A stretch of DNA of 64,000 bases from Utricularia gibba (Eukaryota; Plantae; Magnoliophyta), in NCBI GenBank assembly GCA_002189035.1, contig NEEC01000002.1, positions 5,394,001 through 5,458,000 on the forward strand. The letters run 5' to 3'. This document shows positions 4,215-56,614 of this stretch, piece after piece. A model generated the notes under the pieces. The model had not been told where the DNA came from, made no database searches, and saw only the letters and a list, made by a program, of their open reading frames with translations. How positions within the stretch are numbered: position 1 is the first letter of the stretch; every line of letters begins with the position of its first letter. Position numbers and translations under genes: made by a program.

Positions 4215-5396
4215 TGATAACACCGTTTTTATAGTGTTTTATATATGTTTTTAAGTGTGTTTTATAGGGTTAAATGTTGCTTAGGGTGCCAAAATGTCTT
4301 CTTTTGCGTATTTAGACTGTTGAAATATGTTAATTGTGAAAACATGCTCAATTGTTGCCAATTGAGCCGAAAACTCTAATATTTTGTCTAGTCTATGTTT
4401 TAAGTCTTACCAAGGAAAGAGCTAGTACCGTAGTAGCGCACTTTCCACGTTGACATGTCAGAAGGGACAGAAAAGTTGTTCAAAAGTCACTTTCCGCCGA
4501 AAGCAGCCGCCCTTCTGAAGAGATAAGATATAGAGCAGGGATCTCCCTTCTAGAAGTCAGAGGAAAAAAGACCAAGCTGCCCTTACTTTTGAGCAGCAAA
4601 AGGGAAAATGGAAGGGAGAGAAAGGAGGGAGTACACTGTGCACGCAGAGTGCACAGACAGCGAACAGGAACGAGCGGGAACGAGGAGAACATCGTTTCTC
4701 TGGCGACCTCCAGATCTGCGTGTCTACACCACCGTTCCGGCCAGAACTTCGATTTCCAACAGATCTCCAACCCATAGAAGCATCCTGCAACTTTTATTTA
4801 TAGATTTATGCACTCCCTTTTCTGCGTGAACTTGCTACTGTTATTGTCGTTGTTTTTATGCTTTCTGTTGTGTTTCGGTACCCTGTTGTGAACGAGAAAC
4901 TAGTTGTAGACCTTGTTTTAGCTTATGAATATGCTGCTATTTACCCTTTTTGTGCTTAGCCTTAAGTTTAACGCAATTTACTGTTCCTATGAACCATGCT
5001 CAGTTTATGCAAACCATTACTCTGTTTTTCAGCACTCCAAAGCTAGGTTTAAGTCTATAGCTCTCTTGAGTGACACAAGAGCTAGACCCTGATGTAAAAC
5101 CCAGCCAAATTACTTTTATTTTATGTTTTCTGCACCTTTACGTCAATTTCAATCTCTTTTCACCACTACAACTCATTTATTCCAGTTACTATTATTTTAG
5201 ATCTTACCTGCGTTAGAACTAAACTCCAGAAAACCCCCCTGTTTCCAGTAAATGTGTTAAACTTCAGAAAATTACAACCATTCCCTGTGGATTCGACATT
5301 TTCTTGCCACACTACTAATTCTTGTGATTTGTGTAGTAGATTAGCTTGGTTTATAAATTTCTTTTGATGTGTTGAATGTGTTAAATCGCGACATTA
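4215..5396 (+). mobile_element. Solo LTR, Ty3/gypsy (Athila/Tat-like), ~1.18 kb
   Basis: Starts TGATAAC and ends ...GACATTA (decayed ATCA). Contains CCCTGTGGATTCGAC near the 3' end, as I recall from Athila-type LTRs. No PBS or internal domains. Flanks accaac/agcaac match 5/6. Confidence 0.7.
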
Positions 5397-7308
5397 AGCA
5401 ACCTCATTTCCAACGTTCATCACCAACTACTAAATAATTATATATTTGACCTAAAAATTATGAATTTGAAGTATAACGAACCCAAAAAATTTTATAACAG
5501 GGCATAACGGGCGCATACAATTTCGTAAATAGGCATATTTGACCTACAAAGTTTTATTACTGTAGAATACACCCATTTAATAATGACAAATTTGACCTGA
5601 TGAAATTTCAATTTTGGCATATTTGACCCACATAATTTACTGGTTCGATATATTTGATCCACACAATTAAGCCTGGTTTAATAATATTATTATTATAATA
5701 ATTATTAAAAAAATCAAAATTTTTATATTTGAAAATTTCCCCAAATTGATTAACAAGTGAGTTGAACGAATTTCCTTAAGAATTAACATAAATCGTTCAT
5801 TCCCCTAGCTCCAACATTTTTCCCTTCTGGTACTAGGTGAATTTCGTGCGGAATCTTTTCCGGCTACCGGAGCTGAATAGTGCTACGCGGCAGAGTTGCA
5901 GGGGGTGGAAGCTAGGGTGCTATTTTCTGGCAGTGCACTCGATAAGCCATGGTTGAGGACCATAAGGGTATGGGTCGTAGATGGGTAGTAGGAGGATCAA
6001 ATCAGCGGAGGCAATGGTGAATTTACGAGGCTCCCACTGCCTTTTCTTGAAGCACTTTTCCTTTCAGTGAAGTATTTAGACCCCCTTCAACGTCAATGGA
6101 CTGTTAGTTGAAGGTCAACTTGTAAGTGAAGGAAGGAACAACAGGTTGTTAAGGTTTCAATGGAGTTGAACCTGCACCCAAACCTGAGAAGGGACTGAAG
6201 AAAGCCTATAATGGTACTATGGTAGGAGGAAGAACATTAAAGAATATAGCAGGTAGCGGAGAGGGATAATTGGGAAAGACAACAAACATATTTATTTTTT
6301 AGAGAGTTTATCTTATGGGTATCACTATTATTCATTTCATAGTTTATGTTGTCTCTCTCTTGTAATTAATAATCTGTTGACTTTGCATGACACCATTTAA
6401 TATGAACTGCTAATATCCATTGAATGTTCATCTTAGTTCAATTTTATTGGAGTTCTTGAAAGTTTGCATTCAGGTTTATATTGTGCTTTTAATCTTCAGT
6501 TTTCATATCGCAGTTATTGAAAGTTTACATTTAGGTTTCCTATCCTCTTCGCATGTATGGATATCTGGATTATATGCATTTAATCTTCAGTTTTATGGGG
6601 TCAAATGCAATGAAATGGTGTTTTTGACTTCTTGATGATTCATTAAGAACTGGAAAAAGATTTTTTTTTTCTATAATCACAACCAGCCTATGATGCAAAT
6701 ACTATTATGGATTGAGTTTTGCATTGGTTTTAGATAAAAAAAAAAAATGTAACATGTTCTTCTATAAGATGTTGCACATTATAAGATTATTAAAACATGT
6801 GCTTTTTACTTGTAATTTTTTATGGATTAGTGTTATTTATTTTCTAGGATTATATGCTCTTTGTATTATGCTATCACTAAGGGAGCCTTATGTTCTTTTT
6901 ATGCATGCTTTTAAAGATTTTCCATATGACTTCTGTTATATTTCATGTTAGTCCCATCAAAATAATGGGTGTCAATTGTCCTCGTCAATCTTATTATTGA
7001 TTTCTTAGTTGATTTATTTGAAGATATGTATACTTACACGAAGTATGAAAGCGACTTCGAATTAGACTACGGGAGTGAAGACGAAGACTATGAAATTCTT
7101 GACGACCAATTCCCCCTCTAGAATGATGATTATGGACTATCTTTGCAAGTTCCCGTATCCGAAGGAGTACAGTCGGAAGCTTCTCGTAATGAAACGAGTG
7201 AAGGGCTTTTGAACATTGTCAGAATGGAAAGTGTTCGAATACAAGAACTTGTGTAAGTATAATTTGTTATGATTATATTGTATTATTATTGTCTTTAGTA
7301 TTTAAATT

Positions 7309-9660: not shown

Positions 9661-10425
9661 TTATTTGTAAGTAATTTTCAAAATTTGCTGCTTATTTTAT
9701 TAGTAGGTATTAAGTACTATAATGTTTCTATAGATGGTACGAGATTGGTTCGTTGAAGAATATGTTTGTGAATTTTCAAAGTTGATGAAGATTCCTCATC
9801 AATCTAGGAGTGGCCGAGTAAGCAAATCTTCCAAAAAAATATAGACATTGAACTTGTTTGTTGATATGAGTTTGTAGACTTTGTTATTTGTCTTTGACAT
9901 TATTTATGTATTATATTTGTTTCTTTAAATTTTTAAACAAACATCATACGAAAATCATAATATACATTGATTTCTGTATTTTTGAACATTAATTTATTTG
10001 AATACTTATTACTATCATTCTAATTACATTTAATAAAAAAATAAATACAATTATGTAGAAGGGCACATAAAATATTACACGAGATACACGCCCCTATAGA
10101 GGGTGACACACGAGCATGCAAGGTGGCATACGAGCGTGGGTTACACATGTGGAGGGTGGCATACGGGTGTGGGTTATGGTGACCCACATCCGAGTACGAC
10201 AACCCACGCCCGTATGCCACCCTCCACACGGGCATGGGTTATGGCATATGTCACAACATGTGGAGTATGACATATTTTTTTAAGTTGTTATTTGATATGT
10301 TTGGGGTACTCAAACTTAAGAATTTCATAAAAAAAATAATCTAATAATTTTTTTATTATCAAAAAACACTCTATCTTTATGACTTTTATAGATAGAATGT
10401 AATTTTTTATTGAATTATTTTTTAT

Positions 10426-25801: not shown

Positions 25802-26409
25802 CAATCTAGATTTCCTTTGGGCTTTATACTCGTTGCACTCTCTTCTAGTTCCAGTCACTGCTGCGCTTGATGATTGAAGAGAATTTTCATTTCCCTGAAT
25901 TTAATGGAACCCCGTGAATTGATTTTGCACTTCCTTTGGCTGTCACCTTGATTATGTTTCACTTGTGAATTTACATTATCTTTGGTATTCGATAATTGTA
26001 AGGATTTTAGAGAAATGTTTTATAGGCAATTTCAAGTATGAAATATATTATTTATTGTTGGATTAAATTATCAGAGATCTGATATTGTTGAAATATCATG
26101 CTAAGTAATTATTTTTCCATATTTTTAGTAAAATATCAAATCACATTCGTTTAAATAATTTTAAATCAAACATATAATTTAAAAATCAAGCCTTATTTTA
26201 TTTATAAATAACAATTAAATCAATTTTTTTTCTATTTTTCATTTGAAATTGAACATACCTTTACCAGATTTGACTTCTACAACACGCAAAGTATCTCAAT
26301 TTTCACATTTTCAGGAATATCTTTTTTTGTATAGCTATTAATGTTTGTTTGATTTAAGAAAAGACAATTCTGTCCAAACCGAACTCTTGTTTTTTTAGTT
26401 AAATTTTCC

Positions 26410-26816
26410 CGCACTGCACACCGTTCAAAAAACAAAACCCCGCGTGTTAGTTTTTATGAGGAACAACCCTAGACCGGTATGTGAGGAATCCGACTCGCAG
26501 CACGTAAGTTTTCTCGTCTCTCTTCCATCTGTAATTTGCAGCGTTGTTTCCTTGCCATTTTCCATTATTCCTACAGTGATTCTTTGCCATTTTCTCTTAA
26601 ATCTCTAAATTTGGTCCTGCTTTTAGTGTCAAGTTTCGATTGAGATGTTGGGTACCTCTAGAAATCATTGTTGGAATCAGATTTCTGCTTAATCTCATCC
26701 ATTCTGCTTTTGGTTTTTCAAGCGTTTATGATTGAGCTGTTATCTATTTATTGTCTGGATGCGCGTTGCAAGAGTATAGGTTCAATTTTTTTTTATCTTT
26801 CGAATGGAAATGGATG
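26410..26816 (+). repeat. Upstream copy (A) of the RH32 proximal promoter, exon 1 and 5' intron 1
   Basis: Colinear with 29618-30022. Shared blocks include GAGGAACAACCCTAGAC, CACGTAAGTTTTCTCGTCTCT, GGGTACCTCTAGAA, TTGTTGGAATCAGATTTCTGCTTAATC and GAGTATAGGTTCAAT. Confidence 0.95.
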
Positions 26817-26925
26817 CACGTTTAATTTTTATGTTATCTTGATGGGAGTGGTTATTGGATCAATTTTGTTTTTCTTAATCCTGCTTATGAATTGTTTATT
26901 TGTACAGTCTCTTACAACTTCTGAT

Positions 26926-28194
26926 ATGGAGGAAAAAAGCGCGTTTGTATTTGAGGTTGCACGTATTGTTGCAGAGTACATGTATTCGATGAATCGCCTA
27001 TGCTTTTTGTTTTGGAAGCACCATGATAGACGTTGTAAGAGTAAACTCAAGTACTCTACGAGAGCAAAACTGCCGATGCAAGTAGAACATATTTCGCGTA
27101 CAGTAAGTGATGTTAAGAGTGTTGCACTGGAAAATCTTGGGTTGAGCAGAGATGCCTTCGGGCTTCTGTGCAAAATTCTTGTGGACTATTCGGGACTAAG
27201 ACCTAGCAAGTATGTTGGAGTGAGTGAAATGGTTGCAATGTTTCTAGGCATTTTGAGTCATGAAAAAAGAACGAGAGTGCAGAAACTTGACATTAGAAGG
27301 TCAAAGAAGATAATTTCAAGGCACTTTGAATCAGTTCTCAATGCCGTTCTTGCTCTACATGAAATTCTATTAGCGAAAGCTGTGCCTTCTACTTGTGGAG
27401 ATACTTCCTCTAGGTTCAGCTTTTTTAAAAATTGTGTGGGAGCCTTGGATGGAACATACATTGATGCTCGAGTAAAAGCATGTGATAGAGCCAGGTACAG
27501 AAATCGCAAAGGTAACCTTTCAACAAATGTACTAGGTGTCTGTGACAAAGATATGAAATTCATTTATGTTCTTGCTGGATGGGAGGGATCCGCTGAAGAC
27601 AGTAGGGTGCTTCAAAGTGCACTAACTCGAGCAGACGGCCTTCATGTACAGAGAGGTACATCTTAACATTCAGCATCTTTATATATGCGATGTCAAATTA
27701 ACAAAGGGTTGACATGTAGGTCAATATTATTTGTGTGATAATGGATATGCCAACTGTGAAGGTTTCTTGACACCCTACCATGGTATTCGTTATCAGTTGA
27801 AAGAGTGGGATGTAGATCCTCAAAAATGCTAAAGAATATTTTAACATGCGTCATGCTTTTGCTAGAAATATTATTGAGCGAGCATGGGGTATAATGAAAG
27901 GAAGATGGGGCCATCTTGTAACATGCTTCTTTTGATTCTGTGAAAACACAGAATCGAATAGTTTTAGCCTGTGGCTTGCTCCATAATTTTATTCGCAACG
28001 AGATGCCTATCGATCCTATTGAAGAAGATCTGCCAGAGGGTTATCAGAATGAGGATGCTGACCCAGACATCCTCAAAGAGGATATTTCAAGGGTGCAAAG
28101 CTCCACGACTTGGGATGCTTGGCGTGACAATTATGCTGAGGCAATGTACACAGCATGGTTGAACTCGAAGGAGGAGGTAGTAGAGTCCTCATGA
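26926..28194 (+). pseudogene. PIF/Harbinger (HARBI1/ALP1-like) DDE nuclease, probably disrupted
   Basis: GALDGTY, NVLGVCD, GWEGSAEDSRVL, intron 27656-27719 at QRG|QYYLCDNGY, NIIERAWG, ACGLLHNFIR. +1 indels at 27822-27826 and 27907-27910, and in-frame TAA at 27919-27921. Confidence 0.9.
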
Positions 28195-29617
28195 TTTGAA
28201 GACATGCAAACTACGTCTATTATGCTCTATTTTGAAGTGTGTTGGCTCTCTTAGCAGTAGATTGTCATCTACTTTTGGATCAAAACCCATCTTATTCGGA
28301 AATAGTTTTATGTAGGATTTGTAAATTATAAGTTTGCTAGGTGGGAAACAACTGCAGTATAAGGAATATGTGTTTGTTTTTTAATGTAAATTCAGCATTT
28401 GGATGGAAACACAATGTATTAAATTACATATCATTTTCTTCTTTAAAAAACTGTGTGCCATTATTACCGATATCTCTTGTTTTGTTTTCAAGCATCACTA
28501 ACGATCATTGGTTGTGCCTGAAAATTATATTTAAAAAAATTGCAAGTTTTAGACATTGCTAATTGTCGTTAGTGGTACTAGAAAATTGTATTTAAAAATT
28601 TTGTATGTTCTAATCATCGTTAACAGGTACAGCAATGTTTGGGAATTATATTTTTTAAAAAAAATACATAATTTCCAATTGATTGTTAGCAATGCCTAAA
28701 AAATATATTTTAAAAATCCATAATTAATTTTTATGGGCATTGAGGGAGCTTGGAAACTACATTTTTTTTAAAAAAAAATGCATAATTAATTTTTCAGTCA
28801 TTTTGATATGCTTGTTATGTTGCATTAATTAAAGCCCATGCTTCATGAAGATTTGAGTATTGTTTATTGCTTTTAGGGTTTGCATCCGATGAAAAAAAAA
28901 TCAGTATGAACAACAAATGATATTTTGCATGCTAAAAAATTTGATATCCATAAAAAAGGAAACATTTTGAATGTGGAAAAATAAAATAAAAAAGTGAAAA
29001 GAAAATAAAATATAATAGAAAAGAGCATGAACAAGATGGAGACATTCAGGTACAACAAGAAACCTCTAATTTCATTTTATCATCTAACCCCAAATTATGT
29101 GTTTAGTAGGGTGAATAATTCTAATTTTCTTGGGAGTGGAAATATTATTTAATTGTTTGATACTTAGGAAATACTTAATTATTTCATACACCTCTTTTTA
29201 GGTTATACTTGAATATAAAACACATCATATACATAAACTTCAGAATAACTTGATCTTTTTATTTTTTATCTTGATAATTAAATATTTCTTTTGAAATAAT
29301 TTATTATTGTTTATCTTTTTCAATTTCTTTTCGCATTCTTCTTAAAAAAATGTCATGGGTTTTTTTAGTTATTAAGTTTATTTTCGTACTATTAAATATA
29401 AATAAAGAAAAAAAGACAAATAAAAGTGATAATTTAAAAATTACAATAAATTCCTTTCCTTGGTATGTCAGATTTAATAAATTTAATAATATTAAAATTA
29501 ATTTCAGAATTAGAATATACAAAAATTAAATAAAATTAATTTCAGAAATTTATAAAACATAGCACGGCCCTAATAAGACATCTCGTGAGTCCATGGTATG
29601 CCATCCTCCCCATCAAA

Positions 29618-30022
29618 CGCACTACACCCCGTTCAAAACAAAACCCGCCTGTAATTTTTTGTGAGGAACAACCCTAGACTGGCCTCTGAGGAACGGCACT
29701 CGGAACACGTAAGTTTTCTCGTCTCTTTTCCATCTGTAATTTGGCGCTGGCCGTGGTGCCTTGATTTCCGCCTTCATTTTTCCAGCGCCGATTCTTTGCC
29801 ATTTGCTGTTTTGAGTGTCGGGTTTCGATTGAGATGCTGGGTACCTCTAGAATTTATTGTTGGAATCAGATTTCTGCTTAATCCTAATCCATTCGACTTC
29901 TGGTTAGAATATCATGCGCTAATTTTTAGGTTATGATTAGGTTGTTATTTATATATTGCCCGGATGCACGTTTAATGCGAGAGTATAGGTTCAATGTTTT
30001 ATCTTTCGGATGGAATTGGATG
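29618..30022 (+). promoter_or_regulatory. RH32 proximal promoter, non-coding exon 1 and 5' part of intron 1 (copy B)
   Basis: Strong donor CAC|GTAAGT at 29709; candidate acceptors at 30328 or 30389 just before ATG 30391; telo-box AAACCCTAA at 30358-30366. The exon assignment is inferred. Confidence 0.65.
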
Positions 30023-30390
30023 TAGAAGTTGGTTTCGATGGTTATGGACCTCGTTTACGCTTAACGGGTGACAATACTGCAATTTCTTTTTTTTTTTTTT
30101 TTTTGTAAAGTAAACTGGTTAGTGGAAAAATGGCGTCGAGAAGTTATTATCTGAATTACACACTTTGAATTCCCTTATTTTTCATCTTTTAATTGCAATG
30201 TTGTTTTGTCTTTCTGGTGGCTTGGTTCTTATATTCATATTCTTTGTAAATGCCATTTACTAAATGGGACCTTTGGGGTTGTCTTGGCTGTTTGGTCATT
30301 TCTGAGGGATTTTTTTTCCATTATATAGATTGTTCCTAAAACCAACTCCATCCAAGCAAACCCTAAGCGCTGGCCTGACCAAATTTCAGA

Positions 30391-33300
30391 ATGAAGAGGC
30401 CAATATCTAAGAAGCAGAAACTTCAGCATCGCGACTCAGAGGTCCGGGAGATTGAACTGCTGGAATCATGGATTAATTCAGGGAAGCCCAGCCCGGGCTC
30501 AAATCCCCTGTTGTTTCCCTCATTGCCAGAGAAGTCACCGGTTGGCTTGTTGCCCAGCGGATCCTTCTCACAATATGCTGGTGCCGACAGATTCCAGCAG
30601 TTACCACTGTCTATTAAGACAAAAAAAGGTTTAACCTCCGAGAAGTATGTAAAAATGACAGATATACAGAGGGCCTCCCTGCCACATGCTCTTTGCGGCC
30701 GTGATGTGCTTGGTGCTGCTAAAACCGGCTCTGGGAAGACACTTGCTTTTATTTTACCGGTTAGTTTACAATTTAGTACGCTTTGCTCATCTTTATGCAT
30801 CATATCCGATAGGTTTCTTGGAAGTGTAGTTATTGGTCTGGTCGAAGAAAAAATACTTTGCTCTTTTGAGCTGCAATGAATTAATTACTTATGAAATGAT
30901 AAATTTAGGTTCCACATGCACTTATACATCTATTGATTCTCGTGGGATTTTAGAAATGTTAACTGAAGAGGTTTTCAGGTTTTGGAGAAGCTTTATCGTG
31001 CTAGATGGGGCCCTGAGGACGGGGTTGGTTGTATCATATTGTCTCCCACTCGGGAACTTGCAAGCCAGCTTTTTGGAGTATTAAAAGGTGTTGGGAAGTA
31101 CCATGGTTTTAGTGCTGGACTTATGATAGGTGGTCGAAAAGGCGTTGACACTGAGAAAGAGCATGTGAATCATTTGAATATTTTAGTCAGTACTCCTGGA
31201 AGGCTTCTTCAGCACATGGATGAGACACCGAATTTTGACTGTTCGCAGCTTCAGGTGTGATTGTTTGCTTCTGTGTCTAGTTATTTGATGCCTAACTGTT
31301 TCATAGTGCGGCATTTTTAAGATCCACGTGGTTTCTTGCACTTCAGTAGTTTGTTTTTTAAGGATTTTCGTTCTCCAAATATCATGTATGATTCATTAAT
31401 TCTGTTGTTTTCTTAGCTTTTCTGGTAAGCTCTGACTACAAAGGATCTTCACATATACAAGTTCTTATTTACGTTCAGTTTATTATTTTAATAGTTATCC
31501 ACATAGTCATGTCTATATATTGTTTGAGAATTTTGGTTGATCTTGGATTCCATGATGAAATGGCTAGTCACTTTTTTTCATTTTGGGAAGCGAGCAGATA
31601 CTAGTTCTTGATGAGGCAGATCGTCTCCTTGATTTAGGATTCAAGGACACATTAAATGCCATCATCTCTCAACTTCCAAAGAGACGACAGACCCTTTTAT
31701 TCTCTGCCACCCAAACAAAGTCGATTGAAGATCTTGCAAGGCTGGGCTTGAAGGACCAAGAATATATCAGTGTGCACGAGGAGGCACCCACTGCCACTCC
31801 AGACCATTTGGAGCAGAAAGCTTTGATTGTTCCTCTGGATCAAAAGCTAGATATTTTGTGGAGTTTCATTAAGAAAAACCTCAGTTCAAGAATTTTGGTG
31901 TTCCTTTCAACCTGTAAACAGGTGTTTTTTTTTTTGGGTCACGGCCATATGAACTATAATTTTCCTTAAGTTTAATTTTCATGAAAAACTTTGCTTGGTG
32001 TGCCTCTTGCTGCCCCTCTTTACATTATTTCCATGCTTCTTTAGTCATTGCTATTTCATGTATCTATTGTGGTCATATGGTCCAATTGGGTCAATTCGCC
32101 TTGTGGTCATTTACTCTACTATTTTCTAGTATTCACTTTCTGCTGTACCCCCATCATTTATTTGCTTTAGTGCTTACAGGTATGCAGTAATTGACCTACG
32201 ATTTGATATCTGCACATGACAGGTAAAATATGTGTTTGAAGCTTTCAAGAAACTACATCCTGGAATTCCATTGAAATGCCTGCATGGCCGGATGAATCAA
32301 GAGAAGCGTTTGGTAATATATGAACAATTCTGTGACACTGTGTCTGTCCTATTTTCAACTGATGTTGCATCTCGAGGGCTTGATTTCAAAAGGCAGTGGA
32401 TTGGGTAGTCCAGGTTACCATCTGTTTCATTTTATCAAATGCTTAACTTCGATCCTTCTTTCTCAAGTTATGGATTCTGATTTATTCATTTTCGTTCTTG
32501 TGGTATTTCAGGTGGATTGCCCTGATGATGTTGCTTCTTATATACACAGAGTTGGGCGTACTGCTCGTTACTATTCCGGTGGAAAATCTATTTTATTCCT
32601 TGCTCCCTCAGAGGAAAAGATGCTTGAGAGGTTGCAAGAAAGGAAGATTCCTATTCGTCTTTCAAAGGTATGACTTTCAATGGATTTCTGGACGCAGCTC
32701 TTTGTGTATGCATATTAAAAATAATAATTGATCTTGCTTTACAAGTAGTCATGTTAGGGAGCTACTAAGTTGATGACGTTTTGCAGGCAAATCAAACGCG
32801 ATTGCAACCTGTCTCAAGACTGTTGGCCGATCTGCTAGTGAAGTACCCTGACCTACAAGCTCTGGCCCAGAGAGCTTTTATCACTTACTTGAAGTCAATT
32901 CACAAGCAGCGTGACAAAGACGTTTTTGATGTCACAAAACTTCCAATTGAGAAGTTTTCTGAGTCATTGGGCCTTCCTTTGATTCCCAAAATCCGGTTCC
33001 TTAAGCATAAAGTTATGGCGAAAAAAACATTGGAAGACTCACTAAAACGTAATGCTGATCAGATGCCTTTTGAATCATCGAGGGAGAATCTTGAAAATGG
33101 AATGCACGAGGAAGCCGGATTGGAAGTGGATGATGTTTTCCGGAGGAAGGATGATCAGCATGATGACTCATTCTTTCAGGAAAAAGCCTGTGACTATGCC
33201 GAGACAGAAGAAGCAAATCACCGAGGAGATAATTTGTACGTATATTTCTGTTCTCTTTTTCCAGTTACGTGTGTCATGATGCTGCAAAATTGTTTTTAAC

Positions 33301-34164
33301 TAATTTTCTAAGTATATGGTCTTTTGGGCAGGACAACCACCAGAATTGGGAAGAAGAAAAAGTTGAAGATAAACGTAAATAGGCCTGCTGGCACACGAGT
33401 TGTATTTGATGATGAGGGCAATACCTTGAACCCTCTTGCAAGGCTATCTGAAGTGAATTCTGATCCAGATACAGTGAAGCTGGATATGGAGAAGGGTAAG
33501 CTTCTGTTGATTCCTCACTTAATTTTTTCTGGTGGTTGGTCCCGAATGTGAAGTATAAATCATAAGCTCAAGATTCCATTCATTATAGGAACTAATTTTC
33601 ACAATTAAAGAAAGCGAGTTCTGAAACAAAAGTAAAAACAGATACTCTTGCAAATGAGTAATTCGAAAGTCTTTCTTTCAATAGAGATGTGGAATCACCT
33701 TCCTGTTGATTAAATTCAAGAAAAGTTTACTCTGCATGTTTTGGATTGATTTTGAGTACACAAGTAGTTTTTTTCTTCCTTAAATTTTGGTTAGTTGTCT
33801 TCCAACTTAGATACAGTTTCATGTCTGCTATGCTGTGAGGTGGTTGTGTCTCATCTCTGACTTTTGGTTTCCAGTGAGCGAAAGGTACTCTAAACTGAGG
33901 GAAGAGATGAAGCTCATTGACAAGGAGGATAAAGCATTGGACCGGCAGCGCATGAGGGAGAAGCGCATCAAACAGAAGATAAAGCTGAAGAAGAGGAGGG
34001 GTGACGATACGGCGGAGCCGGAAACCGTACGCGAATTGGCTCATGAGAAGAAGAAACCAAAGATCAACGAAGATGCCAACAACCAGATTCTTCGTCATGA
34101 TCTGATTACAGTTGCAGAGCAAGAAGAACTCGCCCTTAAGCTACTCAGTTCAATGCATTCGTAG
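30391..34164 (+). CDS. RH32: DEAD-box RNA helicase 32 (DBP4/DDX10 ortholog), 8 coding exons
   Basis: Q motif, [45 protein letters not shown] and the DUF4217-like [13 protein letters not shown] region. One -1 indel at 32388-32391. Confidence 0.95.
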
Positions 34165-47900: not shown

Positions 47901-50645
47901 TTGCAATGTTTTTTTAATTATATTTAAAATTTTATGAAGGTAAAAATGATTATTGAAACGAATTAAAACCATTTTTTATACGCAAGGTGAATATTTCGTT
48001 TGTGATGGATTGCAATAGGCTAATGTATTAGGCCCAAAGATTAGGGCTTTGCATTAGCCGCAATGCACACGTGGGTTCGAATAAGGACAAATTTTAGACC
48101 CTTTGTTTTTTTTTTTTTTTACTTAAAACAGATATGGAATACAATATCTCCAAAATGTTTCTAGAAATTAAAAGAGAGAGAGGGTGGAGCCCTAATTGCA
48201 TCATCACATTTACTGGGTCGGGGTCAAGATTTGGTTAGACTTGGAGGGCGTCATTAATTATTGTATTGGAATAGTGATTAATTAGATGATCTAATCTGAT
48301 CATGCTTCAATTAAACGTGCATTTCATATTTGCAATCTCCAACAACTATAGACGAGTTTTTTTTTTCCATGCTGTGTATACCAATTAATGAAGATCACGT
48401 AAGTTTGTTTGGTATAATATTTTAGTTAATGATAGATTATTTTTTATATGTATGTAGACACGTGTTATTGGTTTAAATTCAAAGTACATTTTTTAACGCA
48501 AATTGAGATAATTATGTTTAATAGATATATTTAGAATAAATGAAAGCTGGTTTTATTAAGAAAAATCATCTAAAAACTATTGATTAATAAAAAGACTGTG
48601 TTGGGAAACTAACAATAGGATAGGATTTAGCAATCTTTTGAAGTTCTTGTGGGTGTGGCAAATGTACACAGTAACACAACCAAAGTATATAAAAAAATGT
48701 AAATTATGATAGAAAAGATTAAGTTCAATTAATTATTAATGATTTATAATTTTTTATATACTTGATTATTTTACTTTAAAATATTGATATTAAATTGATT
48801 ATTCTAAGAGATGAGGACTAAAAAGTTAGCCAAGCCGAGGCGGGAGAGTGCTACTGGACTGCTACGTTCCTCGCCCCCTCCAACTGACTGACTCTCTATT
48901 CGGCCCGATGAGGAGTCCTCTTCCTTTCCATCTACAGTGTGGCCCGCTAGAGAGCCCATGCGCATTCCATTGCAAAATAAAAACAATATGTTAAAAAAAG
49001 TGATAAATGCGCATTTTTTAAATTTATTTTATATAATAAAATATTCAGAAATCAAATGTGGCTTTATTAGAATGGTCATTTTCAAAAAGTCAAGTGAAGT
49101 CAAATACAACAAAACGAGAAGCACAATTGGCTGCCGACCTGCACATAAAAAAACTTGAACTGCAGCAACACATGGGGCACGGGGCCATTCAATTTTTCTG
49201 CCCAGCCTTTCGACACCGTTTTGTTTTGGGATCCGCTTCAGTAATTATTTTTCAAAAATATGATTAAACTTACAGAAAAAATTATTAAATAGTTACAAAT
49301 ACATGACTAAAAAAGGGAACAAAAAGCATGCATTAGGAATATAAATGGTCACCCAATTTGATAAAAATACAATTTAATTTGAACCTAAATAGGCACAATC
49401 CAAGTCATCCTCCCTACTTTATCTATTTATTCTGTTATCATAATATCTTAAAATGATTACATTTAATTTTTGAAGATTCTGATATTTAGTTATTAGATAG
49501 TATAATCAGAAATTCAATTCTTTGATTAATTTCAGAAATTATTAAATTTCTATTTTAATAGTTAAAATAAAATATGAATTAAAAAATATATTATAATTTT
49601 TTATCTACTTTAAAAATATAATTATATCATAATATTAAATTATATAATAATTTAATATATGAAAATCTATAATATATATTTTATTTTATAAATTTTTATA
49701 ATATAATTTTATGTTAAACTGATTCTATTTTACATAATTTGAAGTATAATTTCAAATTACACAACATTCACATACATTAATTTGAATTTTTTTTATCAAG
49801 TAAGAGTTAAAAAATTGATATTTAAGTGACCAATTTTTAAATTCTCCAAAGTAGTGGTTTAGGTGATGCCATTCATTCTCGTTGGAGTGGTTCAATAAAG
49901 GTTAGGTGATAAGAGCAACGTGGGTCCCGCAACTTGGACTACCGCTTTGTATGTGTTGGTAGTATGTGCACGCACGTTCCCTTCTTTTCACTCAACCCAA
50001 ACGCAAACCAAAAAAGAAAATAAAAAAAAAATCATCATTTTCTTTATAAAAAATAAAGAAAAAAAACAAGCTTTTCCCTTTATGACTTTTCCCTTTGGGA
50101 ACTTAGTTGTGAATTTTCTCTCCGATTGGGACAAAATTACCATAAAAATTTTAATCATACAAAAACTTAGCAGGGGTTAATCCCATAAAACTAGTTTTTG
50201 AAAACTGGCTCATTATTGATGTGCAAATTTTTTGAAGTGTAAAATTAAAAACATCTTTTAATATTTTTTATTTTTCTCTAATTTTAATATTATAAACAAA
50301 TAGCCATCATATTACACGGAAAGAAGCATGTGGATACTTGATGGCCTCAAGTCTGTGAGTGCATTTAATAGACATGGGGCTCTTTGTTTTCTAGAAATCG
50401 AATTTATTTCCATTAAAATAACTCAAAATCGGACAAAAAGAAAGTTATTTATTTTTTAAAAGAAGAAAATGCTCATCAAATGGAGATAGAAATTTATGGA
50501 GCCAGTGCCAGTGGTCTGGTTATTCCAATTCCACTTCATTTTCAACTTCTCCGGCGGCCTAAAAAAATGTCTCATCACGAAACCCTTCTCCTCCTCCTCC
50601 TCCACCACTACAACATCAACTCTTTTCAATCATCCCTCTGACGCC

Positions 50646-53239
50646 ATGAAGCTTCTCAAGCTACTCTTCTTTCTCCCCTTCCTTTTCGTTTCCTCTTCCG
50701 CCCCCACCTGCTCTGATTCCGACCAGGGCCGTCTTCTGACCCGGGCCTTCGCCGCTGTTCCAAAGTTCAACGCTTTGTGGGTTTTCAACTCCACCCGCGA
50801 CTGCCGCCGAGTCTTCATCACTGATATAAGAGTGCCGGCGAGAAATCTCACCGGAACTGTGGACTGGAAATCCCTCGCAAACATCACGACGCTGAGGGTT
50901 CTCGATCTTTCCGGCAACTCCCTGACGGGAACTCTTCCATCTTACGTTTGGTTACTCCCGGCGCTGGTTGAGCTCAACGTCGCCAATAACCGCCTTGGCG
51001 GCAAAGTTGGCGCTCCTTCGAATCTGAGGGACTCGCTTATCCAAAGAGTCGATGTTTCGTTTAATCGATTCAAGGTTTTGGGGGATTTAACGAATCTTGC
51101 TACTCACCTCACTTCTTTGAATGTCTCTGGTAACAATTTCAATTCCCCGTTTCCCCTGTGGCTTGCAAACTTGTCGAACCTTCAATTTCTTGATGTCTCG
51201 GGTGTAACTTTTCTGGGAATGTGAACCCAGTTGCTGGTCTCAGATCATTGACACATCTCGATGTTTCGAGAAACCATTTAACCGGTAATTTCTCCGGCGA
51301 CTTCCCGCCATTGGAGCATCTGCAGAGGCTGAATGTTTCCTTCAATAATTTCTCCGGGGTTGTTGCATCTAATCAGATTCGCAGATTTGGCACTTCCGCG
51401 TTCCTTCATGGTGGAAATCATCTCATAATTGAGAGACAGAACCGACCTCCCGTCGTCACCACATCTCCCGATTTACATCAGAGTCCCCATAACCCAATAG
51501 ACACAGTTCCCGTGCCCCAGACTGAGAACCGGAACAGGGAACGGGGTGGAGGCGTGAATCGAAGAACGTTGATAGCAATCGTGAGCGCGGTTTCGTCGCT
51601 GGTGCTGCTAACGGGGTGCTGTGTTTCACGGCGATATACAAACGGAAACAGAGGAATCGAGAAGCCGAAAAATGGTCGATTTCGATGCCCATACAAATCC
51701 CCCCATTCCGAATCGAGAACGAGAAATCGGGGCCGTTTTCATTCGAAACAGAATCCGGGTCATCGTGGGTCGCGGATATCCGGGAACCCACTTCCGCTCC
51801 GGTTATCCTGTTCGAGAAGCCGTTGATGAGCCACCTGAGCTTCAAGGATCTGATGGTGGCCACCTCGCATTTCGGGAAGGAGTCGCTGATGGCGGAAGGG
51901 AGATCGGGGCCGGTCTACAGAGCGGTCCTACCCGGCGAGCTCCACGTCGTCATTAAAGTACTGGAGAATGTACGGCACGTCCCCGACGCGGAGGAATTGT
52001 TTCGACACCTCTCGATGCTCCGGCACCCGAACCTGTTGCCGATTTGCGGGTACTGCATTGCAGGTAAACTTAAATGCTCATATTCCCTCTCATTGCATCG
52101 CGTGTCCCCCGATCCCATTCAATTCCTCTCTTCCTTTCACATTTTACATTGAATTGCCTGCTCCCCCTTCCCTTTCAAGTGGGTTGTATCAATTAATTTT
52201 ACCCTGCCGTCTTTCACCACCCCCTCCAAATAACCTCGACGGGCCACCGCCTCTGTCACTAAACTCCGATATAGAGCCCGGCGGTACTTAAGCTTGCTTA
52301 GATGTTTGTGGGAAATGTAGCACAAGAGTGAGCAGACATCCAGTTAGTTTAGTTTTAGGGTGCGGAGGTGGGGATGCCGTGTGCCCTGTAGGAGGAGACT
52401 GACTGAGAGGTCAGACCGTGGGGGTGGGTGGGTGGGGGATTGATAGGAAACGTGGGAGGTTGTGTGTGGTGTCTGGCACTTGGCAGTTGGAGGATTTATT
52501 TCTTCACCAGGGAAGCTCCAGTCTGTAGACTGTGGCATGGCAGTGGAGTAGAGGAGCAGGCATTCATCACTCATGGGGTTGCTTTCTTTTCTTTCTCTTC
52601 ATTTAGATCAGATCGATGATGATTATATGGTTTGCAGGGACGGAGAAGCTGGTGTTGACGGCGTTTATGGGCAACGGCGACCTCCGCCGCTGGTTGCGCG
52701 AGCTTCCGACGGGGGCAGCCAACGTGGAGGACTGGAGCGGCGACACGTGGGAGATTCCTCAAGACAACTCACCCGATAAACTAGCATGGCGTACGCGGTA
52801 CCGCATCGCCGTCGGGGTGGCGCGTGGCGTCGCGTATCTCCACCACGCGGGTTCGAAGCCGGTGGTTCACGGCCATCTGGTGCCTTCCAACGTCCTTCTG
52901 GACGACGACCTGGTGCCCCGAGTCACCGATTTCGGGCTCAATTCCGGGGGCTCCACGGCGGAAGACGTGTACCATTTTGGCATCATTTTGATGGAGCTCT
53001 TGACGTACGACTTCAAACTGGGGTCCGTGGATAAGATACGGAGATTGGTGAAGGACAGACGTGGCATGGAGGCCCTCGACCAGCGGCTCCGGGACGGCGA
53101 GGGATCGGCGAGCAGTGAGATGGTGAAGTGCCTGCAAGTCGCCTACTTGTGCACCGCGGACGCCCCGGAGAAGCGCCCCTCTATGCAGCAAGTCGTGGGT
53201 CTGCTCAAAGATATACATCCTTCGTCCTCCTCTGCTTAG
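50646..53239 (+). CDS. LRR receptor-like kinase, CaMRLK/MEE62-like, 2 exons (intron 52064-52637)
   Basis: Signal peptide, LRRs ([26 protein letters not shown]), TM segment, [30 protein letters not shown] and [14 protein letters not shown]. Two -1 indels in G runs (51200-51202, 51613-51616). Ortholog call is from memory. Confidence 0.88.
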
Positions 53240-54110: not shown

Positions 54111-56614
54111 AATAATGGGAAAAAATTAAAATAGTGAGAACTAGTTTTCTAATTTTTACAGGTATTTGAGATTAATGATACCAAGGGCCCTATTTGATTT
54201 GAACATTCATGATTAGTCACGATTCATGATTATTTTAATATTTCTTTTTTATATTTAGTTTACTAAAGTTATTTTTTGATATTTAAATGAATCATTGGAG
54301 GTTGGTTATGATCTTGTAAACAATCTTATTTTTTCTTCTTTCTTTTAAATTTGCGTACAATTGTGCTTTTCTAGTACTCTCATCTTTTCTAAAACACATA
54401 CTTTTATTACATGGTGTTCCGCTTACTCACGATTAGATCCTCTAATCATCAAAAGATTCATTGCAATCAATCACGGAAGGAGTCACATGGCATCTTTAAT
54501 GATTTCCAGAAATCTATAAATCCAAGTTACATTACTAATTTTTCAGAAATCCAATAAATGACTTTTCACCATTTTACATATGTATCTCAGAAAATTGGTT
54601 TAATTATAAATAAAATTAGAAAATTTAAATTTTATCCATGATTAAAATTATTAAAAACTTTAAATATTATACATAAAATAAATTGAAATAAATATAATTA
54701 GAACATTTAATTAAAATTTGATCAAATATATTCGATCAAATCATTTTTAAATGTTTAAATATTAACATCATATGAATTGAGTATTCTATCAATTTACTTA
54801 TAGTGTATAGTCTTAAGAACCAAAAGTCATTACAAAAGAAGTGAAAAAAAAGGGTTAAACTTGATGTTATTGGAAGTTTACATTTGGAAACTATGTTTTC
54901 ATAAATTGCATTTTTAGGAATTCAAAACATTAGCATAGCTTGAAAATTTAATAAATAAATATGTACAAACATGTAACTATTTCCGAAAATAAATAAAGAT
55001 GTTCTAACCATGGCCTTGTTTTCAACACTTGGGGTATTTCCCATTAGACACAAAAATGATGGCATATTGAGATGGTGCTATAAAAAAAGCAAATAAACAA
55101 TTCTCACTATATCAATTTCAAATATTTGCATTTTGAGTGAATTGGTAAAATAGCCCATTACAAAAACTTTAATACAACATTAGTCATATTTGGTAAACTT
55201 GGCTAAATAATTCCTCTTTTTAAAAAATAATTATTTTTATTAATATATATATTACGGTCGTAAATTGGTTTCATTAAGGAAACTTGATTTTTGAATGATG
55301 GGATCAAGTTGTTTAGTTCCGACTTAAGGTTAGTCAGTTTTTTTGGGTTGATGTTTGAGTGAAAACATTAATGACTGACTAGAATTTTTACATAGAAACT
55401 ATCGGAACGGAAAAATTATGAAACTAAATAATACAAGTCAAAATGTAGAGAGTTCAATCTTTTATTCTTTAAATTTCCTTATATTTATATGGAGAACCGA
55501 TCCAACTGAATTTTACAGATATTGGCTACTTTTTGCATTTGATAGCCATACACGTGGTACTGTTGAAAGATAACTACCGATTGCTATGATATTCATTTAA
55601 TTCGATTATTTTTCAGACTTTGCCAAAAATGATCACCATAACTTAGTTTTGAGATTTATCAGTCTACCTACCTATAACAGGTTGTCAGGACACACTAACG
55701 ACCTCCTTCTAGTTGATTTCGTCAAGGAGAGACCGATTTTGCTATCTTATGGTTCGTTGATTTATAAGTGTCTCCTCCACTTGCTTCCCCTTGGCACTTG
55801 CCGATTTCAAATTACATCAATGTATTTCATTTAATGTATAAAAAATATATTTCTTAAATACAATGTATCATTTATTTGATAAAAATTATCTTTTTAAAGG
55901 AATTTTTTATAAATAAAAAATATAGATTCTGCAAAAATTATATTTTATCCTAATGCAATTAGCTATATTTATAATTTAACATATAAAAAACTTATATAAT
56001 TTTTCCAATGTCATAAATCATAGTATTTTTTTATATAAATAATAGTGTAACACATTTTAATGTAACTAATATTCATTATCATAACTTTTTTCAATATTTA
56101 ATAAGTTTACATATTAAAAAATGGATTATATCACAATCTACATTGATATTGACTTGGTGCAATTCCATTACATTGGGGAAATTGCGTTTTTAAACTACAA
56201 AAATGGGATTTGATAGGTATATAGTAAAAATTTAGAATTAATAAAACAATAAGTTAATCAGATTTAAGATTGATTTAGATAATGCGTCATCCACACGCAA
56301 TATGTTAGTGGAGTTATATTTGCTCTCAAATATTTTATTTTCCCAAATAAATGGTAAGAGTTTGCACTTTTTGGTATCTATGGGTTGTCAATATATTTAC
56401 CAGAATTGACAATGTAATTGATTTAATCTCATAAAAAAAACTCAAGTTGTGTGTGACACTATTCATGATAATGTACTCAATCAATGATTTGACCATATTT
56501 ATACCATTGAAAATAGTATTAGAACGGAAACTCATTCAAAACACAAACATGTATCAAATAAACCTTCAATTTTTGAATCACTTTTATGAAGAATGTATTA
56601 ATTGAGAATTATAG

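Follow-up and report, generated by a model that had tools for sequence, protein, structure and literature searches.

Among the closest described relatives of the locus analysed here, which lies in a stretch of 64,000 nt of Utricularia gibba DNA (hereafter, the window), are the plant PIF/Harbinger ORF2 proteins (DDE_Tnp_4 / Plant_tran), including M569_02213 of Genlisea aurea. The nuclease encoded at this locus resembles them in colinearity over the full length, in a DUF8040-type N-terminus, in the DDE residues and in the C-terminal LLHNFIR and W..WRD motifs; in contrast to them, the locus lacks TIRs, a TSD and a Myb-like ORF1, its frame is interrupted, and the identity is about 50-55%. What identifies an autonomous element of this family, namely, TIRs with a 3-bp TWA target duplication, a Myb/SANT gene and an uninterrupted ORF, was not found here. 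A second set of related systems, the domesticated Harbinger nucleases ALP1/ALP2, HDP1, HARBI1 and PANDA (PMC4671723, PMC7282668, PMC5339849, PMC9129072), is similar in that these are lone nucleases with no transposon ends that are expressed in a host context. Here, however, the DDE triad is intact, the ORF is truncated, and no conserved orthologues or partner were found. With regard to the ALP1/ALP2 clade in particular, one or two DDE residues are replaced in its members (DGA in ALP1) (PMC4671723), whereas our nuclease has an intact triad and its only intron falls after codon 243 of 400, and so carries neither of the characters that mark the clade. Domestication is more generally recognised by transcription, which we observed, and by an intact ORF under purifying selection, which this gene does not have now.

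Two other classes of loci are relevant for comparison. First, host-transposase fusions that arise by 'transposase capture' splicing (bioRxiv 10.1101/2020.05.07.082677) share with our locus a host 5' exon and its donor upstream of a transposase exon and its acceptor; however, the splice junction that defines such fusions was looked for in RNA contigs and was not seen, and, with a host exon that is non-coding, the outcome would be no more than a donated UTR or promoter, rather than a protein fusion. Second, expressed transposase pseudogenes and decaying relics of DNA transposons are, like this locus, transcribed and spliced, with a premature stop, frameshifts and no ends. In contrast to such relics, the locus is flanked by a 405-bp duplication of host 5' sequence, and it is better kept than the age of this duplication predicts.

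The duplication, which the initial annotation had judged by eye to be some 75-80% identical, is real. Positions 26410-26816 (copy A) and 29618-30022 (copy B), both on the + strand, form one colinear match, as seen with MAFFT and with blastn against the whole window, where 310 of 378 aligned positions are identical (82%, or 73% with gaps counted), with a K2P distance of 0.21, eight indel events and a BLAST E of 1e-72. The edges of the block are sharp, no similarity was found 5' of 26410/29618, and blastn detected no third copy in the 64-kb window. The donor block CACGTAAGTTTTCTCGTCTCT is the same in both copies, as had been claimed and as the alignment confirms, and a telo-box-like AACCCTAG, located by motif search, is kept in both as well, at 26465 in copy A and at 29670 in copy B. 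Each copy is found together with its two unique flanks inside a single DNA contig of run X1 (26067-27191 and 29242-30074, respectively), the DNA depth over the two copies equals that of single-copy flanks, and no further contigs align to them.

As originally annotated, copy B represents the genuine 5' end of an RH32-like DEAD-box helicase gene. An RNA contig of run X9 covers this 5' end as transcribed, from 29600 to 30758 on the + strand, with joints at 29708>30329 (GT..AG) and 30758>30978, and the exons 3' of copy B match RH32 from 18 plants. Exon 1, which extends from 29600 or earlier to 29708, is non-coding; it is followed by an intron (29709-30328) and by exon 2 (30329-30758), where the ATG is found at 30391. 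Copy B starts at the 19th known base of exon 1, includes the donor at 29708/29709 and extends 314 nt into intron 1; copy A, its diverged duplicate, has most of exon 1 (26410-26503), the splice donor from 26504 and ~313 nt from the beginning of intron 1. Since the transcript start of RH32, at or before 29600, lies outside the block, at least 18 nt 5' of its first base (29618), the block represents the larger part of the 5'-UTR exon together with the donor and the beginning of intron 1, without the upstream promoter. Of the host promoter and first exon that were said to be duplicated, it is therefore only most of the exon, with its donor and the start of its intron, that stands.

Between the two copies lies a segment of 2.8 kb (26817-29617), with no homology found to the RH32 locus, which contains the leader of the nuclease, the nuclease gene itself and an AT-rich spacer (28195-29617) in which no gene, repeat family or RNA family could be recognised. 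Neither tandem nor dispersed repeats were found. The lack of TIRs and of a Myb/SANT ORF, previously noted, was borne out: seed extension and local alignment against shuffles yielded no inverted repeat, either at the insert ends or near them, that exceeded the shuffles (P 0.23 and 0.05; AT-rich matches only), no TSD was found at the insert, and no ORF of at least 50 aa in 25990-26925 or 28195-29617 has any Pfam match. An inverted match of TTGATGGG(G)AG (26838 / 29617), found by eye, was rejected, being not above the AT-rich background.

Both the acceptor tttgtacag, with its last base at 26907, and the ATG at 26926, the start of a DDE_Tnp_4 (PIF/Harbinger) ORF, are as annotated. Coding exon 1 (26926-27655, + strand; 243 codons plus 1 nt) encodes the N-terminal region, which is DUF8040-like, as well as the first D (ALDGTY), and matches Pfam DDE_Tnp_4 with an E of 3.8e-07, above the cut-off, the piece that contains the catalytic E being a weaker match. 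It is followed by an intron of 64 nt (27656-27719, GT..AG), spliced out in RNA (joint 27653>27718, cut +2), and by coding exon 2 (27720-28194), with the second D (YYLCDNGY), the E (NIIERAWG) and three lesions. On sequence comparison the nuclease is assigned to the PIF/Harbinger (DDE_Tnp_4) transposase family: phmmer matches go down to 1e-55, the protein aligns colinearly with 16 intact homologues along 400 codons (401-column alignment), and its D, D and E align with the family-invariant catalytic triad. Its best protein relatives, ~50-55% identical, belong to multi-copy families in Lamiales, and no orthologue above ~55% identity was found among 5.8 billion proteins. In the phylogenetic tree the nuclease is sister to two Genlisea aurea copies (99/95), within a Lamiales clade of multi-copy nucleases, on a long terminal branch of 0.84. 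The 'ALP1-like' labels among the protein matches are automatic names, and at the 50-55% protein identity of the nearest homologues, synonymous sites are saturated.

Transcription of the nuclease gene from the + strand, with removal of its own 64-nt intron, was shown by an RNA contig of run X5, which spans 26551-28402 (1785 nt; depth 12.9) and is continuous apart from this intron; a 176-nt piece was recovered in a second RNA run, X18. Given that X5 has zero depth across intergenic DNA, the spacer and intron 1 of RH32, the contig is not DNA carry-over. What does not hold is the annotated splice from 26503 to 26908. The sole RNA contig over the gene is unspliced across 26551-26907, that is, inside the proposed intron, and continuous to 26925, and none of three RNA runs gave a joint from 26503; all three are represented by assembled contigs of older runs, which drop rare isoforms. 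Thus, the 26503>26908 host-exon splice is not the main RNA form. The unspliced leader that is seen instead holds nine upstream ATGs, and its first base, 26551, is not a transcription start site, because in the same run the RH32 contig likewise misses its first ~210 nt.

The three lesions of exon 2 all fall within 100 nt; neither they nor the 64-nt intron had been noted in the initial annotation. Two of them are +1 frameshifts, caused by an extra base in an A5 run near 27822 and in a G4 run near 27907, and both extra bases are in the assembly and in X1 DNA but absent from the X5 RNA contig. The third, an in-frame TAA at 27919-27921 that replaces a family-conserved Arg, is present in DNA and RNA alike; it is codon 310 of 400, so that the protein ends short of the conserved C-terminal LLHNFIR helix. 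In the RNA allele the frame is kept up to codon 309, and past the TAA another 90 codons are open and colinear with the homologues. With regard to the chimeric gene that had been proposed, transcription is real, but a working gene is not what this frame encodes. As they occur in homopolymers and are absent from RNA, the two frameshifts may be assembly errors; X1 agrees with the window but may be the assembly's own data. The assembly may, more broadly, hold homopolymer indel errors that mimic pseudogenes. Elsewhere in the window, an LRR kinase gene (50496-53239) likewise shifts frame twice near homopolymers.

With a broken frame and a host-exon splice that is not seen, the locus is best read as an expressed pseudogene rather than as a working chimeric gene, namely, and in our opinion probably, as an immobile relic of a PIF/Harbinger nuclease, from a Lamiales-specific lineage, in intron 1 of the RH32-like gene. 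A segment of 2.8 kb would have been inserted in the 5' part of this intron, leaving ~405 bp of the target on both sides of the insert, as in an oversized target duplication during insertion or repair, which we infer from the geometry only. Copy B, downstream, serves the live helicase gene, and transcription of the nuclease would start in or just upstream of copy A, given that the unspliced leader of at least 375 nt (26551-26925) begins within this copy. In line with this reading, the RH32 loci of Sesamum and Penstemon have no DDE gene; they also have no TOR1L neighbour and no nucleotide similarity to copy B, and are not syntenic with the window. Nor do the loci of ornithine carbamoyltransferase (OTC), a neighbouring gene in the window, have neighbours in common with it in Erythranthe and Buddleja. 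The 405-bp duplication would then be an unusually clean footprint of a foreign segment entering the 5' intron of an essential gene, which was not killed because a full 5' copy of exon, donor and intron was kept downstream. If this conservative reading is right, the locus adds a further case, of no more than local interest, to the expressed transposase pseudogenes.

What counts against the expressed pseudogene is that its ORF is much better kept than neutral decay since the duplication predicts. Assuming that the insert and the A/B duplication have the same age, with a per-lineage d of ~0.10 and a CDS of 1200 nt, the neutral expectation is ~4.6 stops, ~12.7 indels and ~17.5 losses among 82 family-conserved residues, whereas we observed one stop, 0-2 indels and mismatches at 6 of 88 residues (P about 3e-4 and 7e-4). 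A plain dead-on-arrival relic fails to account for this preservation, and past host constraint on the nuclease is possible, if unproven. We therefore entertain, tentatively, the alternative that the nuclease was formerly domesticated and is now being lost, having been selected by the host, once immobile, over a large part of the time after the duplication, with copy A as its 5' regulatory region, and having then gained the TAA and, in one lineage, two frameshifts. An ORF preserved beyond the divergence of its flanks is the signature expected of a transposase that was kept by its host and then abandoned. The clustering of all lesions within 100 nt, the open codons past the TAA, the continued transcription and splicing, and the presence of a nuclease without TIRs or partner ORF, of which no copy at ≥90% identity was found in the DNA contigs of X1, point in the same direction.

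However, former domestication has to contend with the lack of an orthologue in the protein search already described, and with closest relatives that are paralogous and non-syntenic: the nearest one, in Genlisea aurea, adjoins an RPL4 gene and not RH32 or TOR1L. Moreover, the nuclease retains a complete DDE triad, like active elements; it may postdate the duplication or have been renewed by active copies through gene conversion; and the indel rates of AT-rich intron DNA overstate what is expected for coding DNA. The complete scenario is that of a domesticated transposase born and dying within one lineage: it would have been immobilised in the 5' intron of RH32, an essential ribosome-biogenesis helicase gene, would have used the duplicated, telo-box-bearing 5' exon as its regulatory region, would have been under host selection for most of the ~10% per-lineage divergence, and would now be decaying, with a stop common to the reference and the RNA plant and with frameshifts in which the two differ. 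In our view this is unlikely. To our knowledge, losses of domesticated transposases have rarely been documented.

Transduplication of the Pack-type, in which the 5' fragment of RH32 was picked up by a Harbinger element that carries copy A as internal cargo, is improbable. A fragment of a host gene does lie directly 5' of the transposase ORF, and an AT-rich inverted match (26167-26211 / 28292-28336) would enclose both copy A and the nuclease. Yet this match is weak, 71% complementary, of low complexity and not above shuffles, and comes with no TSD; captured pieces normally land far off, whereas the source is here 2.8 kb away; the ends of the copies coincide with those of the insert; and neither the window nor the X1 contigs yielded a second copy at ≥90%.

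Even less probable is the working chimeric gene of the initial annotation, with host exon 1 spliced from 26503 to 26908 onto the nuclease ORF under a promoter of the ribosome-biogenesis type. The donor context of copy A is that of RH32, which is used in vivo, a plausible acceptor and the shared telo-box-like motif are in place, the RNA allele keeps its frame to codon 309, and contigs can miss minor isoforms. Against it stand an RNA contig unspliced over 26551-26907 with no joint from 26503 in any of the three runs, a block without DNA from upstream of the RH32 transcript start, the nine upstream ATGs of the unspliced leader, and a TAA before the LLHNFIR helix in both DNA and RNA. Lastly, two direct repeats around an internal segment do resemble an LTR layout, and the initial annotation had allowed for a dispersed repeat, a TE end or an assembly artefact, but to read the 405-bp block as any of these, or as an LTR, is hardly credible. 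DNA depth is single-copy with no extra contigs; the 64-kb window contains just the two copies, which are 18% divergent and have flanks of their own in DNA contigs; copy B is a genuine exon, spliced in a transcript that starts outside the block; and the internal gene is a DNA-transposon nuclease, not gag/pol.

The best-conserved part of the duplication is a block of 78 nt (26617-26694 / 29806-29883), with 91% identity between the copies. A structured or small RNA, such as an intronic snoRNA, was rejected as the cause, with no Rfam hit at E≤1 over 25900-30450; the consensus fold of the block is weak, at -12 kcal/mol.

As the initial annotation had proposed, the segment at 26410-26816 (copy A) is a colinear duplicate of 29618-30022 (copy B), both by sequence reading and by alignment of the two segments. 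Searching the 64-kb window by blastn with the extended flanks returned exactly these two intervals (E-value 1e-72), and no third copy of the block. The MAFFT alignment gave 310 identical positions out of 378 (82%), a K2P distance of 0.21 and eight indel events of 1-23 nt each, with similar divergence in the exon-homologous (80% identity) and intron-homologous (83%) portions, and no similarity between the copies upstream of 26410 and 29618. The 21-nt donor block is the same in both, at every position. Read support was evaluated on assembled contigs of four runs, namely, the public DNA run X1 and the RNA runs X5, X9 and X18. X1 contigs span each copy together with both of its unique flanks (26067-27191 for copy A and 29242-30074 for copy B), and X1 depth over the copies equals that of adjacent single-copy DNA. 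Thus, the duplication is neither an assembly artefact nor, at identities of at least 90%, a high-copy repeat. Within the duplicated intron part, identity rises to 91% over 78 nt (26617-26694 and 29806-29883), from about 82% for the block as a whole. This stretch lacks a match in Rfam and its consensus fold is weak; it may represent a regulatory element of the intron, or a tract of gene conversion.

The gene that follows copy B encodes an RH32-type DEAD-box helicase (Pfam DEAD and CTE_SPB4); 18 RH32 proteins used as tblastn queries cover 30391-34161 at 57-65% identity. On the forward strand, RNA run X9 delimits exon 1 of the helicase gene (29600 or earlier to 29708), a 620-nt GT..AG intron 1 (29709-30328) and an exon 2 that starts at 30329, with the ATG at 30391. 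The claim that promoter and first exon had been duplicated holds for most of the non-coding exon 1, its donor and 314 nt of the 620-nt intron. It does not extend to DNA upstream of the transcript start, that is, the promoter in the usual sense, since the first base of the block lies at least 18 nt downstream of that start.

A telo-box-like AACCCTAG is present in each copy, within the portion that corresponds to the exon (26465 and 29670), and the telo-box AAACCCTA is found at 30358, 33 nt upstream of the RH32 ATG. As RH32 of Sesamum and Penstemon carries it about 43 and 68 nt upstream of the ATG, respectively, AAACCCTA at 33-68 nt before the ATG is, judged from these sequences, a conserved promoter-proximal feature of the gene. 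Promoter-proximal information of the ribosome-biogenesis type may therefore, in part, have been copied with the block. The boxes were recorded at 9957 in the comparison loci L004/L005, at 9932 in L006 and at 30358 in the window, where the 5'-UTR exon of RH32 holds a further telo-like box; this further box is the duplicated one. The window RH32 is 60-65% identical to all Lamiales RH32s, whereas the asterid proteins among the matches listed for an Ipomoea query reach about 66-81%; this greater divergence fits a fast-evolving lineage with no annotated close relative. No DDE gene was found within 10 kb of RH32 in Sesamum and Penstemon.

Between the copies, a putative acceptor (tttgtacag) ends at 26907, 18 nt ahead of the nuclease ATG at 26926, as had been described. 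The ORF that begins there has a Pfam DDE_Tnp_4 match and aligns with plant nucleases of the PIF/Harbinger family, with E-values as low as 1e-55 and a top identity of about 50%. Read in pieces, with X placed at frame breaks, the predicted protein is colinear with 16 intact homologues over 401 columns, and retains the DDE triad (ALDGTY, YYLCDNGY and NIIERAWG) and the C-terminal motifs LLHNFIR and W..WRD. By profile, colinearity and triad it is thus assigned to this nuclease family. At the near-invariant positions of the family it has the conserved residue in 82 of 88 cases (93%), compared with 79-100% for intact homologues in leave-one-out comparisons. Its frame is also open for 86 codons upstream of the ATG (26668-26925), and this AT-rich stretch contains further ATGs in frame (26728, 26842 and 26887); the N-terminal extension encoded in an unspliced transcript would be hydrophobic, and has no counterpart in the homologues.

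Three lesions, all within 100 nt of the forward strand, interrupt the frame in the window: an A5 run near 27822 and a G4 run near 27907 each have one base too many, and a TAA stop occupies 27919-27921, where the 16 aligned homologues have Arg (AILR), save for a Gln in the Papaver sequence. DNA and RNA data alike support the stop. Relative to the window, the X5 contig has three substitutions (27170 G>T, Cys>Phe; 28110 T>C, synonymous; and 28361, in the 3' UTR) and three 1-nt deletions, every one in a homopolymer (26786, 27822 and 27907), the last two falling exactly on the frameshift sites. The RNA allele is therefore in frame up to the TAA, and at best yields a 309-residue protein with the triad but with the C-terminal 90 residues of the fold missing. 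X1 DNA agrees with the window at all these variant sites, although X1 may be the assembly's own source data. An LRR receptor-kinase gene at 50496-53239 (+) bears on the reality of the frameshifts: its expected single long exon is spread over three frames, changing near a G run close to 51200 and near A5 and C7 runs at about 51670. Either this gene is a pseudogene or homopolymer indel errors affect the assembly, which makes such errors a live possibility.

The X5 contig (1785 nt, depth 12.9) covers 26551-27653 and 27718-28402, skipping a 64-nt GT..AG intron (27656-27719, +). Together with this skip, zero X5 depth over 25994-26387 and 28555-30327 (intergenic DNA, spacer and RH32 intron 1) indicates spliced plus-strand RNA rather than DNA carry-over; a 176-nt piece from X18 also maps to this gene (28118-28293). 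The contig is unbroken through 26551-26925, inside the intron (26504-26907) by which 26503 had been thought to be spliced to 26908, and no joint from 26503 was reported in contigs of any run. Hence, a splice from host exon to nuclease is not the main RNA form, although a minor 26503>26908 isoform could exist, since contigs drop rare variants. Nor is the end at 26551 a transcription start, as the far better-covered RH32 contig of that run (depth 67) begins only at 30433 and so misses about 210 nt of the mRNA 5' end documented by X9. The nuclease transcript could begin inside copy A or some way upstream; RNA contigs of the upstream TORTIFOLIA1-like gene (Pfam TOR1L1_N and TOR1L1_C) stop near 25900-25990. 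From 26551, the unspliced leader has nine upstream ATGs, one in frame (26728).

The locus is not an autonomous element, as none of TIRs, TSD, ORF1 or an intact ORF was found. The TIR search gave nothing above shuffles and the Pfam search of flank ORFs gave no Myb/SANT or other match, in agreement with the initial annotation; tandem repeats of note and Rfam families were also absent. With moderate confidence, we favour a Harbinger nuclease pseudogene, immobile yet expressed, in an insert that lies between two copies of a 405-bp segment across the RH32 5' exon-intron boundary, with transcription most likely starting in or near copy A. The observation of a duplication thus stands, but the chimeric-gene interpretation is only partly supported, given the TAA, the missing 26503 joint and a promoter outside the block.

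Since the copy ends coincide with the insert ends, the simplest reading is that the 2.8-kb segment arrived as the block was duplicated, in which case each copy and the nuclease would have accumulated about 0.10 substitutions per site. The lesion load, low for such an age, fits two readings, namely, an ORF selected for most of the time since duplication, or one younger than the duplication. Selection is not expected to keep a single inserted transposon copy intact at its own locus. The main rival to our pseudogene reading, which we consider unlikely, is that the nuclease was once host-maintained and is now decaying. In its favour, a neutral 1200-nt CDS at d = 0.104 would have about 4.6 new stop codons (1 observed; P(<=1) = 0.05), about 12.7 indel events at the rate between copies (0-2 observed; P(<=2) = 3e-4) and about 17.5 losses among 82 family-conserved residues (6 of 88 observed; P = 7e-4). 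However, AT-rich intron DNA gains indels at higher rates than coding DNA does. A younger ORF, inserted later or converted by an active copy, would fit as well, but TIRs and a partner gene are missing and the X1 DNA contigs contain no near-identical copy.

Maximum-likelihood analysis of 37 sequences placed the nuclease as sister to two copies from Genlisea aurea (99/95 support), within a Lamiales-only clade (99/97) where several species have multiple paralogues; its terminal branch is 0.84, against a median of 0.34. One Genlisea copy, M569_02213 (5015-6267 of a 6.7-kb contig, L001), adjoins the ribosomal protein L4 gene (RPL4), and its contig has neither a called Myb gene nor similarity to copy A, so it is not a syntenic orthologue. 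It is a lone nuclease with an open frame, RPL4 being the only other called gene, and a second paralogue exists in Genlisea; nucleases of this small clade may tend to occur alone. The geometry of the window locus resembles that of vertebrate host-transposase fusions by 'transposase capture' (bioRxiv 10.1101/2020.05.07.082677), but their defining splice junction was not found in our contigs, and the host exon here is non-coding.

Some minor features accompany the insert. One X1 contig (depth 3.55) links 28667 to 29536 through 15 unrelated letters, skipping 868 nt with a short side of 25 nt, and X1 coverage is close to zero across 28555-29145; the cause may be structural variation in the spacer, or AT-rich DNA there that does not assemble. 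Between the TORTIFOLIA1-like gene and copy A, several X1 contigs stop or diverge at 26120-26240 (loose ends at 26158, 26189 and 26220; 26237 joined to 26328 through 22 unrelated letters), and a weak 69-nt match lies at 54593-54656; the explanation may be a heterozygous indel, or a dispersed repeat that is short and AT-rich. Lastly, X9 and X18 RNA contigs and one X1 DNA contig match only the 34 nt at 27726-27759 (YYLCDNGYAN), diverging on both sides, which suggests that the genome contains, at another locus, one or more further PIF/Harbinger nuclease paralogues that are expressed.
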